Positions 27,414 to 33,987 are shown, numbered from the stretch's first letter. The stretch: DNA of 64,000 nt from Hyaloraphidium curvatum SAG 235-1 (GCA_025558095.1 JAIVFI010000015.1:124001-188000); one strand, 5' to 3'. Numbers and translations: made by a program. The notes: generated by a model from the sequence alone, not told the origin.

Positions 27414-27613
27414 CTTGGCGAGCAGGCTGCCCATCAACTGAGGGACGAACGATGTTGCGATGAGCGATGACTGGGTGCGAGACCGCGCGACAACACGACA
27501 ACCACTTCGGAGATTAACGCGCTGCGTGCCGCGAACCGCGCCGCCGAGACCTTACCTTCGTGCACCGTGCACTTTGGAACATCGTCGTCGAAGCCAGGGG
27601 CGGGGTGCTCGCG

Positions 27614-28736
27614 ATGGAGACGCATAGAGCCGCGCGCGTTCCCCCGTTGGAGCAGCCCATTTTCTCGCTCTCCAACGGCGTCAAGGTCCCCGGCATGGGC
27701 TTCGGGACCTATTTCGGCGATGAGGACGCGCCGCTCTCGCAGGAACGCGTGGACGAGCTCGTAAAGGCGGCCGTCGACGCCGGATTCCGTCACGTGGACT
27801 GCGCGTTTCTATACGCGAACGAGGCGAAGGTCGGAAGAGCTTTGAACAAGGTCCTCGGGAGCCATAGGCGAGAAGAGCTCTTTGTCACGTCGAAGCTGTA
27901 CGGCACCTGCCACGAGCCGGAGGTCGTTCCGATGGCCTTCGCGAAGAGCTGCGGGGACCTCGGCCTCGACTTCTTGGATCTCTACCTCATGTGAGCTTCC
28001 GGTCGAGACGCTCTCTGTCATCTTCAGTCACTAACATGTGCTTGCTTCAAGTCACTGCCCTCTACCTTTCCCTCTGCCGCCGGCGGGACTTGAGACCATC
28101 GATCCAGTTATAGACCACGAAACTGGCCTGCCAGTTGTCGGCACGACGCCGCTGATGGACACATGGCGCGCCATGGAGCTGCTCTACGACTCTGGTGCCT
28201 GCCGCGCGGTCGGCGTTTCGAATTGGACCGTCCCGATGATTCAAAAGATGCTGGACGAGTGCTCGGTTCCGCCGATGGTCAACCAGGTCGAAGTTCACCC
28301 GCTTTTGCCGCAATCCGGACCCGATCCGGGATGGAACGGCCGAGAAAAGTGGCCGACAACGGGGCTTGTCGACTTTTGCAAGTCCAACGGCATCCACGTA
28401 ACGGCTTACTCCCCGCTCGGAGCTGGACACTTCGGGGCGGAGGACCCGAGCGTGCTACAACATCCCGTGGTGCTGGAGGTCGCGGACCGCTGCGGCATCT
28501 CTCCGGCTTCGGCGTGCCTGAGCTGGGTTGCCAAGCGGGGCATGAGCTGCGTCAGTCGGACTAAGAACCTCGCTCGAGTTCGCGAGAACATTCGGCTCTA
28601 CGATCTCGGCGAGGAAGAGATGCGCATGATGAGCTCCATCCCTGATCGCTGGCGGTACATACAGACCCTGAATGGCTGGGGCATCGACACTGCCGGGGAT
28701 ACCTTGGGGCTCAAGAAGAAGAAGCTCAAGAGCTAG
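27614..28736 (+). CDS. Aldo-keto reductase; intron 27991-28051
   Basis: LSNGVKVPGMGFGT, tetrad HVDCA/LYANE/TSKL/HCP, VGVSNW, NQVEVHP, AYSPLG. Confidence 0.93.
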
Positions 28737-28811: not shown

Positions 28812-31731
28812 TCAGAGGCGAGCAGCAGGCGCGCTGTTGCCGATGTGCGCCTCCGCGTTCGCAATGACGATGGTGGTCTTCATAACAGAGTCGGGCGTCA
28901 GCGAAACCGAGTCGATCCCGTGGCGAACGACAAACTCGGCCATGTCGGGGTCTACGAAGAAGCTAATCAGCGATGGTTCCACTTCTTCCACGCGAATCCG
29001 ACTCACAGTCGCTCGGAGCCTGGCCGCAGATGCCACTGTGCCTCTTGTTGCGCCGCGCACCCTCGATGGCCAAGCGAAGCATAGCCTTGACGCCGGGATC
29101 CCTCTCGTCGTAGCCCTTCAGGATGCCCGAGTCGCGGTCAACGCCGAGGGTGAGCTGCGTTAGGTCGTTGGATCCGATCGAGAAGCCGTCAAAGTATTTG
29201 GAGAACTCGTCGATGGACAGCACTGCGAAGTGAAAACCGTCAGCAGCAGCGCTCGAATCCATTGCCGTAGTTCTCACCGTTGTTGGGGATCTCGCACATG
29301 ACATACATCTTCAGGTCGTTGACGCCACGCTTGAGGCCGTGCTTGGCCATTACCTCTTGCACTTTGATCGCCTCGTTCACCGTGCGGCAGAAAGGAATCA
29401 TCAGAATCAAGTTCTGAAGCATTGCAATGTCAAGATCGTGCATGCGGTGGCAGTTAGAGTGATCCCACCTTGAGGCCCATGACCTCGCGCACGCGCTTCA
29501 TGGCGGCGCACTCGAGAGCGTAGCCCTCTTCGTAGGCGGGATGGAAGTAGCGCGAGGCACCGCGGAAGCCGATCATGGGGTTCTCCTCGTGGGGCTCAAT
29601 GCCCTTGCCTCCGAGCAGGGCGGCATATTCTGCGCGGATCCTCAGCGAGAGTCAACCTGACCAAGATGCCCGAGCTCACCGTTGGACTTGAAGTCCGACA
29701 TGCGCACCACCACCGGCCTCGGATAGAAGGCGGCCGCGATCTGGCCGACGCCCTCGCTGAGCCTGCGGACCATGTACTCGGGCCCCTTTTCGCCGTTGAG
29801 GATCTTGCGGATCCGCGCCTTCTCCGACTCGTCCTTGACGACTTCGGGGTGGATCAGCGCCATCGGGTGGATCTTGATGTACTCGGAGATGATGAACTCC
29901 ATCCGTGCCAGGCCGACGCCGTCGCAGGGCAGCATCGCCGTCTTGAGCGCCAGCTCGGGGTTGCCCAGGTTCACCATGACCTTGGTCCTCGGCTTGCGCA
30001 GCTTGTCCAGCTGGATCTCGTCCTTGGAGAAGGGCACCTTGCCGTCCCAGACCAGGCCGTACTCGCCCTGCGAGCAGTCGAGCGTGATCATCTGCCCGTG
30101 CTCGATTGCCTTGGTGGCGTCCTCGCAGCCCACGACCGCGGGCACACCGAGCTCGCGCGAAATGATGGCGGCGTGGCACGTGCGCCCGCCGCGGTCGGTG
30201 ATGATGCCCGAAGCCTTCTTCATGATCGGCTCCCTGAAGCGCAGCATGAGCAGTTAAAAGTCAACGACACGGACTCAAACCCACCAGTCAGGGGTGGTCA
30301 TCTCGGCGACGAGGATGTCGCCGGCCTTGAAGTGCCTCAGGTCTTCAAGCCGGTGAACGACGTGAGCATGGCCGGTGGCGATTTTTGTCCCGACTGCGCT
30401 GCCGCGGGCCAGCTGCTTGAACTTCTTGGTGTCGCCGATGGCGTAGGTGGTCAGCGTGCGCGCGGAGCGCTTCATAGAGTGGACGGTTTCTGTCCGAGGG
30501 TCGGATCAGCGCCCATCCAAAACTCGGGCAAGGCGAGCCAACCAGGCCTGGCCTGCACGATGTAGAGCTCGCCGTCCACACCGTCCAGAGCCCACTCGAT
30601 GTCCATGTGCTGGACCTGCCCGTCCTTCCTCAGCTTGGTGTAGTGATCCTCGATCTCGATGGCGTCGCCGGCCAGCTTGATGATCTGGGCGTCCGTGAGG
30701 CAGTAGCGGGCGGCCTTGACAGGGTCCGTGGGGAGGTTCTTGACGAAAGTCTTGGGGTCATAGACCATGGTGACCTGCTTCTTGCCCAGAATGCGGGAGA
30801 GCACGGCGCGGTGGCCCTGCTTGTAGGTGGGCTTGTGCACGTACGCCTGGTCCGGGTCGACGGCGCCCTGGACGACGTTCTCGCCGAGGCCGTAGGATCC
30901 GGTGATGTAAACCACGTCCGGGTGGCCGGTCTCGGTGTCCAGGGTGAAGATCACACCGGCGGCGCCGATGTCCGAGCGGACCATCTTCATTATGCAGACG
31001 CTGAGCCTGACCTTGAAGTGATCAAAGCCCTGGAAGACCGTGATCACGACGATCACAGACGAATTCGAAAGATCAAGCAGAGGATCACGCACCTTGTCGA
31101 GACGGTAGGAGATTGCGCGGTCGGTGAAGAGGGAGGCGCAGCATTTGCGGTAGGTGTCCAGGACGGCGGCATCGCCCTTGATGTTGAGGAAGGAGTCGTG
31201 CTGCCCGGCGAACGAGGCGTCCGGCAGGTCTTCCGCGGTGGCCGAGGACCGCACGGCGACGGAAATCTCGCCGTGGTACTCGGAGCAGAGCTTCCGGTAC
31301 GCGGCCAGGATCTGCTTTTCGAGCTCGGGCGACATGCAGCCATTGTAGACGACGTCGCGGCACTTGGAGCCGACATTCTGGATTGCAGCCACGGTTTTGT
31401 TCTCCTGTTGGCGAAAAACAAATGAGCCTGATTGTGCATCGCGGCTTCGCGAGATCCAGGGGCCAAACCTTATTGATTGGGTCGAGCAAACGGTGAAGTT
31501 CCGCCCAGTCGGAAGGCGAGAGGCAGTCCTTGTACGCGTTGCCGGTCACGGCGTACCCATTGGGGACCTTGGCGCCGACCTTTGTCAGGTGACGGTAGAG
31601 CTCGCCCAGGGAAGCATTCTGGGCGAAGTCCGTCAAGGCGAGCTCATTGGACCAGTGAATGTGCTCACCTTCCCGCCCACGAGTGGGACGTCCGTCAGGG
31701 CGAGCTCGTTGAACCAGCGAATGTAGCTCAT
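28812..31731 (-). CDS. ppsA: Phosphoenolpyruvate synthase (pyruvate, water dikinase), multi-exon, C-terminal PTS1 -ARL
   Basis: VGGK|[37 protein letters not shown], phospho-His motif [73 protein letters not shown]; ends APAARL*. Confidence 0.95.
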
Positions 31732-32108
31732 CGCGGGCAGCGCGTCGTCGAGCGCGAATGAGAACGAGAACAGGCCGGGTCGGTGCTTTTCGGAGGGAAA
31801 GAGAAGGTGGGTCCGGGAGGTCCCGGTCGCGGGTCGGAGCGGAGTGGCAGCGACGCAATGCCCGACGGAGTGCCGCGGAGAGAGATTGCCGGCCTACGAC
31901 GCCGCGATTGCACGGCGCGGCGCTAGGCAGGACCGGGCGTGCCGGGTCGGATTGGTTGGAGGAGTTTGGCTTTGGCGTGAGTCAACCGACGTTCAGGCGC
32001 CACGACGTCGTTGTGGGCGCAGCATGCATCCTCAAGGGACGTCGAGTCACACTCGCTCCGTTTCACTCTTGCTTTTCTGCGTTTCTCCGATACCCTCTTG
32101 AAATTGCC
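31732..32108. promoter_or_regulatory. Probable bidirectional promoter between ppsA and pfk
   Basis: 377 bp between divergent ATGs, with pyrimidine-rich tracts before each start. Function is inferred from geometry only. Confidence 0.5.
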
Positions 32109-33987
32109 ATGGTCCAATCGTGGGCGTTCCGTGCGTGCTTTCCGGGGCCCGGCGCTCACCGCGCGTCCTCGTTGCCCCGCACCGACGCCACGCCAAGCAG
32201 CGAGTTCGAGGTCGACTCGCTCGGCCCGGCCACCATCAAGACGCCTCTCGACAATGCGCACATCGTCACCGACAGTGAACGCGTGTGGCTCCACCCGGAG
32301 TGCGATGCGCCGGATCAAGCGCGGCTGCTCATCGCGGGGCCGCGGTCGCACATGTACTGGAACCCCGAGACCGTCCGTGTTGGCCTTGTGACCTGTGGAG
32401 GGCTCTGGTGGGCACTTGGACGCAACGCTGGCCGCGCTTGGACGGGAGATTGAGGGTTCTTGTCGGCCCGCGTGCCGCCTGCAGTCCCGCCATGAACAAC
32501 GTCATCCGTGAGGTCGTGCAATGTCTGCGCTACCGATACGGTGTCAAGGAGAAGATCTTTGGTTTCAAATTCGGGTTGGTACACGGGATCACGGGGGTTC
32601 TTTTGGCTTTCGGGCTCATTGGGATGGCCACCCCGACTTCCAGCTACTGGGGAATCGCAAATGAGCAGTACATGCTGCTGGACGAGGAAGACGTCAAGGT
32701 CCGGCTCGAATCGCGTTGCTGCGCCTCCTATCTGTCGGCTCACGGGGTCCTCGGCGCTTTTCTAGGAACTGCACACCAGGGGAGGCTCCCTCATCGGCAC
32801 CAGCAGGTCGGCGTGATCCAACTCCGTCGCCTCACATTGCTGACCTTTTCGTCCTCCAGAGGGAACCAGAGCCCGGCGAAGATGGTCGAGGTCCTCCACA
32901 AGCTCGGGATCAACATCCTTTTCGCGATCGGTATGTCCTCTTCGGAACCACATTCACTGATCGCTCATCACGTCGTGTGCAACCCATGTAGGCGGTGACG
33001 GAACCCAGCGCGGTGCTTCCGTGATCTACCAGGAGCTCTTGCGCCGCAATTTCCCCATGTCCGTCGTCGGTATCCCCAAATCCATCGACAACGACATCGC
33101 CTACATCGACAAGACGTTCGGCTTCGAAACCTCGGTCGAGCTCGCCCAACCGGCGCTGCGGGCGGCGCACGAGGAGGCGCGGAGCATCCGGCACGGCGTC
33201 GGCCTCGTGAAGCTGATGGGCAGGGAATCGGGGTTCATCGCGCTCCACGCCGCGCTGGCCAACGGGGACTGCAACATGCTGCTCTTGCCGGAGGTCAAGT
33301 TCACGGTGGACGACGTGCTGGATTACCTGCAGGAGAGGTTCAAGAGCAAGGATCACGCGCTGATCGTGGTGGCCGAGGGCGCGGGCATGGTGGGCACCTC
33401 GGACTCGTGGGTCGTGAGATTGCTGATCGAGCTGTCGTTCCAGGACATCCTCCCGCCCACCGGCAAGGATGCCTCGGGCAACGATATCATGCAGGACAAC
33501 GGCATCTGGTTGAGGAACCAGATCAACGATGGACTGAAGACGCGCGGGATCAAGGTCTGTTGCGCTCCGTCTCGATGTTGTCCGGGATCTGACCCCGATC
33601 TCCACCTTCAGGACGGTCGCGTAGTCTACATCGACCCTTCCTACTCCATCCGCGCGGGCGTCGCCAACCCCTCCGACGCCCTCTTCGCCTCCGTCCTCGC
33701 GCAGCACTGCGTGCACGTTGCCATGGCCGGCAAGACCAACTGCCTCGTCGGACGGATCAACGGCCAGTTCGCGGTGATCCCGATCGGCAAGGCCGTCGCG
33801 TTTCGGAAGCACGTCGAGCCGCGGGGGCTGTACTACCAGGCGCTGCTGGACGCGACGGGGATGCCGAGCTCGATGAGGAGGAGAGGGGTGCCGCTGGTCG
33901 GGCAGGTGGGTCGTCTCGGTCGGCTGTGTTTGCTGGCTATGGTTGACAGTGCGCTCGAAGACGAACAAGGCGAAGGCGAAGTTGTAG
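32109..33987 (+). CDS. pfk: ATP-dependent 6-phosphofructokinase of the PPi-PFK-like (trypanosomatid/plant-type) clade, multi-exon; last intron 33906-33960 gives PTS1 -AKL
   Basis: AGPR..YWNP, VTCGGLC|PAMN, FGFKFG|YWG, IG|GDGTQRGA, PKSIDNDI, TFGFETSV, VKLMGRESGFIA, VAEGAG, KDASGN, YIDPSYSIRA. Single catalytic domain. Spliced end GQ|TNKAKAKL*. Confidence 0.92.

Follow-up and report, generated by a model that had tools for sequence, protein, structure and literature searches.

Gene models at the locus

The window analysed here is a stretch of 64,000 nucleotides (positions 124001-188000 of contig C15 in the 31.9-Mb assembly) from Hyaloraphidium curvatum, which we take to be a non-flagellate member of the Monoblepharidomycetes; its guanine-plus-cytosine (GC) content ranges from 55 to 77%. 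A phosphoenolpyruvate (PEP) synthase gene on the minus strand and a 6-phosphofructokinase (PFK) gene on the plus strand lie head to head in it, and their predicted products end in ARL and AKL, both of which fit the canonical peroxisomal targeting signal of type 1 (PTS1), taken throughout as C-terminal [SAC][KRH][LM]. A preliminary description of this DNA had placed the two intron-bearing genes here, divergent and 377 bp apart, in an early-diverging fungus, and had read them as part of a glycosome-like compartment. The arrangement was borne out by reading both strands and checking the exon models, and the host by a public PFK protein named for H. curvatum together with the assumed taxonomy.

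Joined exon models were translated solely to check frames and ends. Homology searches used exon or open-reading-frame (ORF) references, or the public proteins P0001 (the PFK) and P0396 (a paralog of the PEP synthase), and trees were built by quick maximum-likelihood searches, with the Shimodaira-Hasegawa-like approximate likelihood ratio test (SH-aLRT) as the sole support value. The features of the pair are as follows.

28812-31731, minus strand: PEP synthase (pyruvate, water dikinase) gene, bacterial type, ARL end; 10 exons, 807 codons in frame
28812-28951, minus strand: terminal PEP synthase exon; TGA stop at 28812-28814, ARL codons at 28815-28823
31619-31668, minus strand: PEP synthase intron 1, a decayed tandem copy of exon 1 (31669-31731)
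31732-32108, no strand: divergent intergenic region, 377 bp between the two start codons
32109-33987, plus strand: single-domain ATP-PFK gene, PRK06830 (plant/trypanosome) type; 9 exons, 461-codon model in frame
33906-33960, plus strand: last PFK intron, predicted, 55 nt; 64 nt with the alternative acceptor at 33969
33961-33987, plus strand: terminal PFK micro-exon, TNKAKAKL and stop; AKL codons at 33976-33984, TAG at 33985-33987

The PEP synthase

The PEP synthase model starts with the ATG at 31731; its nine introns (GT..AG) are 50-64 nt long and mostly carry a CTGAC/TTGAC-like branch motif 12-25 nt upstream of the acceptor. In the last exon the conserved C-terminal block runs unbroken into ...NSAPAARL-stop, the last 45 codons requiring no splice; the tail extends beyond the last conserved block, as it likewise does in the paralog and in bacterial relatives. 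Searches with the exons and ORFs returned PPDK_N (PF01326, 2.9e-82), the mobile PEP-utilizers domain (PF00391, 3.9e-23) and PEP-utilizers_C (PF02896, at 1.8e-09 and 3.5e-19), so the three-domain architecture of PPDK_N, mobile phospho-histidine domain and PEP-utilizers_C is complete. The closest solved relative is Neisseria PpsA (2ols, 2.2e-63), and the GGRTCHAAI phospho-histidine motif and the C-terminal GICGQ cysteine motif are intact, as aligned with P0271. Domains, structural match and catalytic motifs together uphold the identity given in the preliminary description.

Curated models were scored on the paralog P0396, whose identity to the window exons is 51-89%, in place of the spliced window protein, and gave 1060 bits against a cut-off of 740 (TIGR01418) and 1096 against 598 (NF005057); on the model for pyruvate, phosphate dikinase (PPDK) P0396 scored just 108 bits against a cut-off of 843. 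The window dikinase is a predicted pyruvate, water dikinase, not a PPDK.

Intron 1 of this gene resembles the exon before it: 31625-31662 and 31687-31724 are 87% identical across 38 nt at a spacing of 62 nt, exon 1 starting with ATGAGC and the copy in intron 1 with GTGAGC. The paralog on C43 has no intron at the positions of window introns 1 and 2. Intron 1 seems, from this repeat, to have arisen from a duplicated 5' coding segment in which the former start codon became the splice donor.

The 6-phosphofructokinase

The PFK introns measure 53-77 nt. After the conserved block ...LLDATGMPSS... the frame continues to ...VPLVGQ at 33905, where the last predicted intron opens with a GTGGGT donor; this intron has a TTGAC branch-like motif at 33943-33947 and in-frame AAG acceptors at 33960 and 33969. 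Removal of 33906-33960 gives a protein ending ...VGQTNKAKAKL, and the NCBI protein P0001 (477 residues, named 6-phosphofructokinase [Hyaloraphidium curvatum]) splices to the acceptor at 33969 and ends ...VGQAKAKL. Because the two acceptors share a frame and both products end in KAKL, the AKL end is independent of the choice between them. With the intron retained the protein would end ...VRLIA, the unspliced frame staying open for 38 further codons.

At the 5' end the NCBI model differs from ours, starting at an ATG at 31758, 27 bp from the PEP synthase ATG, and taking out two extra introns, one of which (about 32120-32196) lies within the first exon of the model that starts at 32109. The annotated N-terminus is an arginine-rich extension of 43 residues, with a predicted local distance difference test score (pLDDT) below 50 in the AlphaFold2 model of P0001.

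In this superfamily a glycine in GGDG, where pyrophosphate-dependent (PPi-) PFKs have aspartate, is linked, together with PK(S/T)IDND, to the choice of phosphoryl donor. P0001 scored 476.2 bits on the equivalog model NF005301 (PRK06830-type ATP-PFK, cut-off 400) and reached the cut-off of neither the eukaryotic PFK1 model nor any PPi-PFK model. Its best solved match is the PFK of Trypanosoma brucei (2hig, 2e-94), with GGDGTQRG and PKSIDND aligned with the motifs of that enzyme. Model score and motifs place the PFK in the PPi-PFK-like lineage, on its ATP-using branch, ATP being the predicted donor, in agreement with the trypanosome-like, ATP-type member of the PPi-PFK lineage described earlier.

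C-terminal tags and the shared intergenic region

The ends ...APAARL and ...TNKAKAKL had been described as canonical PTS1 signals; both were recovered from the sequence, and the public protein P0001 also ends in AKL. The window's six frames contain 585 open segments that are 60 or more residues long; just one, the terminal exon of the PEP synthase itself, ends in [SAC][KRH][LM], and a chance origin of the tags is unlikely given this background (about 0.2%). An ARL-ending tail was found in 0 of 46 full-length prokaryote-type PEP synthase relatives among the matches listed.

The AlphaFold2 model of P0001 has a mean pLDDT of 86.6 and a predicted template modelling score (pTM) of 0.83, with a confident core and with pLDDT below 50 over the last 15 residues (463-477), so that the tail is predicted to be disordered. 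The tail is also basic, with lysine at -2 and -4 and no acidic residues. A basic tail lacking acidic residues favours binding by PEX5, the PTS1 receptor.

The intergenic region between the start codons is presumed to be a shared bidirectional promoter. It contains CGGGTCGG three times, all on the plus strand (31776-31783, 31830-31837 and 31943-31950); this motif, which was chosen after viewing the sequence, has 12 matches in the 64-kb window, where 9.9 would be expected by chance. The motif could be a binding site common to the gene pair.

Untagged paralogs and origin of the PEP synthase

Three PFK genes are present in the genome: a canonical two-domain PFK1 (C4), the window gene, and a further single-domain gene (C8), whose product P0002 is 66-69% identical to P0001 and ends ...TDNF, with no PTS1. 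The PEP synthase genes number two, the window gene and the C43 gene, the latter encoding P0396 (814 residues), which ends ...AANGA and likewise has no PTS1. Both families thus hold one tagged and one untagged copy of the enzyme type found at the locus, and the tagged copies are head-to-head neighbours.

P0001 and P0002 are sisters (support 100), with a longer branch for the tagged protein (0.29 vs 0.062). In the PEP synthase tree, which was built on the N-terminal 300 residues, the window protein and P0396 are sisters (SH-aLRT 98), the tagged branch again being longer (0.65 vs 0.30), and the pair is nested in a bacterial clade with good support, which has alphaproteobacterial and Mycobacterium-type enzymes among its members. 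In both pairs, by these branch lengths, it is the tagged copy that evolves faster. The phylogenies, which the preliminary description had proposed for both enzymes, strengthen the case for targeting in that each tagged gene is sister to an untagged paralog.

A search with the PEP-binding domain of P0396 (a 478-residue open frame), which does not see more distant fungal PEP synthases, returned H. curvatum's own protein as the sole fungal one among the best 120 named matches; the remainder of these were bacterial, at no more than 67% identity. The window PEP synthase protein itself was in none of the match lists. A representative search for relatives gave identities of about 42-72%, and 5 of the 8 top-identity fragments were visibly frameshifted and GC-rich. 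The nesting in a bacterial clade, together with best matches outside H. curvatum that are all bacterial, fits acquisition followed by duplication: the history looks like bacterial acquisition, duplication, intron gain, and then gain of a PTS1 in one copy. The earlier statement that PEP synthase is not known from Dikarya should be qualified, as most eukaryotic PEP synthase annotations lie in leotiomyceta, within Dikarya, without functional evidence (review, PMC8100219).

As a separate observation on the untagged PFK gene (C8, L004, about 2555-2670), the annotated last intron of P0002 is 63 nt long, in frame and stop-free, and the sequence it would encode, GWKAAKRRLTELL..., is similar to the tail of P0003, which comes from a different assembly; this segment may be coding rather than an intron.

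PFK ends of PTS1 type across other fungi

The single-domain PFK occurs widely among Chytridiomycota and is also present in Coelomomyces; on the tree, all 22 of the fungal or fungus-like proteins fall into a single clade (support 99). PTS1 or PTS1-like ends are found on 7 of these 22 and on 0 of 34 bacterial-type relatives, as follows.

AKL: Hyaloraphidium
SKL: Cladochytrium
CKL: Blyttiomyces
GKL: Phlyctochytrium planicorne and Chytridiales sp. JEL0842
ANM: Dinochytrium and P. bullatum

In genomic DNA the SKL, the CKL and both GKL ends lie in one exon with the conserved ...FLD.SGM... block, and for that reason are not artefacts of gene prediction. Enzymes without a tag occur in Gonapodya (the other monoblepharid sampled), Entophlyctis, Zopfochytrium, Gorgonomyces, Polyrhizophydium and Quaeritorhiza. 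Those with a tag lie dispersed over the tree, which requires at least 2-3 changes; the tag may have been gained several times, or gained early and then lost in places.

Survey of the other enzymes

Other enzymes of the pathway were found in the genome with Pfam models, and their last exons were then read; pyruvate kinase, phosphoglycerate mutase, glycerol-3-phosphate dehydrogenase, PEP carboxykinase and malate dehydrogenase were left out of this survey. Single loci were found for hexokinase, phosphoglucose isomerase (PGI), class II aldolase, triosephosphate isomerase (TPI), glyceraldehyde-3-phosphate dehydrogenase (GAPDH), phosphoglycerate kinase (PGK) and enolase, along with two fructose-1,6-bisphosphatases (FBPases), a bacterial-type class I aldolase and three adenylate kinases. 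Their ends are listed below.

Hexokinase: ...VIAAVA
PGI (C3:1035444-1037114): ...KKQRKL
Class II aldolase: ...DVERYK
Class I aldolase, bacterial-type (C14:333502-334700; PF00274, 37.9 bits): ...KASGNL
TPI: ...CQAWA
GAPDH: ...DGLGSF
PGK: ...ALTDKA
Enolase: ...GSLRTL
FBPases: ...EAESG and ...AANGK
Adenylate kinases: ...TWFQ, ...TGPI and ...AKSE

No canonical PTS1 is present on hexokinase, PGI, the class I and II aldolases, TPI, GAPDH, PGK or enolase, nor on the two FBPases or the three adenylate kinases. The RKL of PGI, which is non-canonical, is the sole near-PTS1 end among the enzymes surveyed. Stop read-through of GAPDH, PGK and TPI gives short extensions with no PTS1, and no PTS2 (type 2 signal) nonapeptide was found within 1.4 kb upstream of 12 surveyed genes, the third adenylate-kinase-family gene (C9) lying outside the scan. 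The preliminary description had proposed a PTS1 and PTS2 check of hexokinase, PGI, aldolase, TPI, GAPDH, PGK and adenylate kinase, and this brought up no canonical tag.

The class I aldolase gene is intron-bearing and stands alongside the usual fungal class II aldolase; its bacterial look was judged by eye from the translation.

Interpretation of the gene pair

The pair is best explained as peroxisome-targeted isozymes, not a glycosome, that arose by gene duplication and lie under one short divergent promoter, a reading to which we give a probability of roughly 0.55. The tagged copies are probably peroxisomal enzyme variants, as predicted from their ends and their untagged sisters. Both would be imported into the peroxisome matrix by PEX5, import of each being PEX5-dependent and the genes probably co-regulated, and the untagged copies and the other glycolytic enzymes examined would stay cytosolic. 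With the other steps in the cytosol, the organelle would hold two isolated steps and not a pathway.

A role can be suggested tentatively, in that the pair might tie the peroxisomal adenine-nucleotide pool to small phosphorylated metabolites that cross the membrane. PEP and hexose phosphates cross the peroxisomal membrane, adenine nucleotides need carriers, and the limit is about 400 Da (PMC9512073). The PEP synthase would run in reverse, forming pyruvate and ATP from PEP, phosphate (Pi) and the AMP released by peroxisomal acyl-CoA synthetases, and PFK would spend that ATP on fructose 6-phosphate; alternatively, PFK near equilibrium might return ATP from ADP and fructose 1,6-bisphosphate, and a study of the reverse reaction in trypanosomatid PFKs is cited by PMC9512073. 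Such an adenylate-recharging role, argued by analogy, is doubtful. A second possibility is that enclosure would keep enzymes that lack eukaryotic allosteric control away from pyruvate kinase and FBPase, so that futile cycles would be avoided.

Several points weigh against this interpretation of the pair and its role. The AKL end of PFK requires removal of the predicted terminal intron of 55 or 64 nt, and is otherwise replaced by ...VRLIA, and the N-terminal extension of the annotated PFK, predicted to be unstructured, could represent untranslated leader sequence or a further targeting signal. The survey turned up no adenylate kinase, aldolase or other partner with a PTS1, which leaves PFK with no obvious adjoining step in the organelle. 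The equilibrium of the PEP synthase reaction lies on the side of PEP by about 13 kJ/mol (PMC8100219), so that regeneration of ATP would require PEP/pyruvate and AMP/ATP ratios that are both high. Finally, no PEP synthase gene lies beside PFK in Gonapodya or Cladochytrium, the result of the synteny comparison in zoosporic fungi that had been proposed.

Among the alternatives, the one that survives best, and which we regard as unlikely though to be taken seriously, is that the tags do little, both enzymes being mainly cytosolic and ARL and AKL weak, masked or fortuitous. It would fit the want of pathway partners in the organelle, the six untagged PFKs from Gonapodya to Quaeritorhiza, and the several chytrid ends that are non-canonical (GKL, ANM). 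It sits poorly with two adjacent genes that are both canonical against a background of about 0.2%, with the tagging of one of two paralogs in both families and the adjacency of the tagged copies, with the enrichment of PTS1-type PFK ends in the fungal clade (7/22 vs 0/34), and with a PFK tail that is basic and predicted to be disordered.

A wider proposal, also doubtful, is that early-diverging fungi evolved a peroxisomal ATP-PFK independently, repeatedly or ancestrally within Chytridiomycota, and that in Hyaloraphidium it was joined by the PEP synthase as a recharging pair. There the horizontally acquired PEP synthase and the PFK would turn AMP or ADP back into ATP within the peroxisome, drawing on PEP and hexose phosphates from the cytosol, as a convergent minimal counterpart of the kinetoplastid glycosomal PFK and PPDK.

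Dual localisation of PFK by splicing, with retention of the last intron giving a cytosolic protein (...VRLIA) and its removal the peroxisomal AKL form, is improbable; it would be akin to the cryptic PTS1 isoforms of Dikarya, and the annotated N-terminal extension could, under this explanation, add a third destination. The tag does have a micro-exon (18-27 nt) to itself, preceded by a short intron that offers two usable acceptors, the unspliced frame is open as described above, and alternative splicing is known for fungal peroxisomal isoforms (PMC4207609). However, an untagged paralog is present already, so that the tagged gene need not supply a cytosolic isoform, and the unspliced tail bears no similarity to the tail of that paralog.

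A glycosome-like compartment, in which H. curvatum peroxisomes would run substantial glycolysis or gluconeogenesis including PFK and PEP synthase, is very improbable: the canonical PTS1 on both enzymes, the T. brucei PFK as closest solved relative, the glycosomal location of the related dikinase PPDK and the PTS1 of Diplonema PFK (PMC9512073), the near-PTS1 of PGI, and the cryptic signals by which GAPDH, PGK and TPI reach peroxisomes in Dikarya (PMC9512073, PMC9549241), which make hidden signals possible in principle in H. curvatum, are set against surveyed glycolytic, FBPase and adenylate kinase ends that lack [SAC][KRH][LM], GAPDH, PGK and TPI with no PTS1 on read-through, 12 genes with no upstream PTS2, and a cytosolic-type PFK1. 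Of the two features taken to mark a glycosome, tags on most enzymes from hexokinase to PGK and upper glycolysis with no cytosolic duplicate, neither was found, the latter because PFK1 and the untagged paralogs are present. Of the preliminary interpretation, the two PTS1 ends, the ATP-PFK lineage and the short divergent region stand, and the glycosome-like compartment does not: no canonical PTS1 and no PTS2 motif was found on the surveyed glycolytic enzymes, an outcome that the description itself had named as refuting it, and a normal duplicated-domain PFK1 is present.

Neighbouring genes and annotation

The other genes of the window (an aldo-keto reductase, ankyrin-repeat ORFs and unknown ORFs) contributed nothing to a pathway. 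The aldo-keto reductase gene is given below; its product ends ...KKKKLKS, which is not a PTS1.

27560-28736, plus strand: aldo-keto reductase gene, at least 2 exons, running convergently towards the PEP synthase gene's 3' end

Both genes of the pair have in-frame introns without stops (31030-31092, 33390-33443 and 33555-33611), crossed by ORFs of 306 and 333 residues, and ORF-based annotation would be misled by them.

Relation to known systems and significance

The C-terminal extension of T. brucei PFK ends in the PTS1 AKL. The glycosomal ATP-PFKs of T. brucei and T. cruzi (2hig, 6qu3) share the lineage of the window enzyme, its single domain, a length of about 460-490 residues and a C-terminal extension. 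The H. curvatum gene differs from them in being fungal, with 8 or more introns, in being one of two paralogs beside a canonical PFK1, in belonging to a fungal clade apart from the sampled bacterial-type relatives, and in having untagged enzymes at the adjoining glycolytic steps.

For glycosomal PPDK it is the reverse role, from AMP to ATP, that is usually discussed. This kinetoplastid enzyme is one of the related His-phosphorylated dikinases and, in a peroxisome-derived organelle, converts PEP and pyruvate into each other with AMP and ATP (PMC9512073); by analogy it is the nearest functional counterpart of a predicted peroxisomal PEP synthase. PEP synthase, however, uses Pi and water and not PPi, so that the ATP-forming direction is thermodynamically harder for it than for PPDK. 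The bacterial PpsA enzymes (Neisseria 2ols, Mycobacterium, alphaproteobacterial) have the same three domains and catalytic motifs at about 55-67% identity, whereas the window gene has nine spliceosomal introns, a fungal duplicate and an ARL tail. In Thermococcus, PEP synthase forms ATP from AMP and PEP in vivo, in glycolysis (PMC8100219); the enzymes of Thermococcus and Pyrococcus are archaeal, cytosolic and coupled to AMP-producing, ADP-dependent sugar kinases, whereas the PFK here is of the ATP type.

For Dikarya, cryptic peroxisomal isoforms of GAPDH, PGK and TPI were described by Freitag et al. 2012, as relayed in PMC4207609, PMC9512073 and PMC9549241. As far as those accounts go, the likeness is that glycolytic enzymes become partly peroxisomal by a PTS1, sometimes through 3' splicing; the differences are that here PFK and PEP synthase are concerned, with the tag on separate dedicated paralogs, and that GAPDH, PGK and TPI of H. 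curvatum lack such a signal. Peroxisomal PFK is known in kinetoplastids, and a PTS1-bearing PFK in Diplonema (PMC9512073). A full-text literature search returned no report tying PEP synthase, in any organism, to PTS1 or peroxisomes, and no report of a PTS1-bearing PFK in a fungus or chytrid.

The enclosure of glycolytic enzymes in peroxisomes is an old question, studied almost solely in kinetoplastids and diplonemids, with a partial parallel in Dikarya. Side-by-side tagged copies with untagged paralogs, together with the recurring tags on chytrid PFKs, make a simple natural test case for what one or two glycolytic steps would give a peroxisome, be it adenylate balance, shielding from unregulated kinases or avoidance of futile cycles. 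The PEP synthase, for its part, is a clear example of a bacterial gene that appears to have been acquired, duplicated, filled with introns and, as its predicted targeting would have it, redirected to an organelle.

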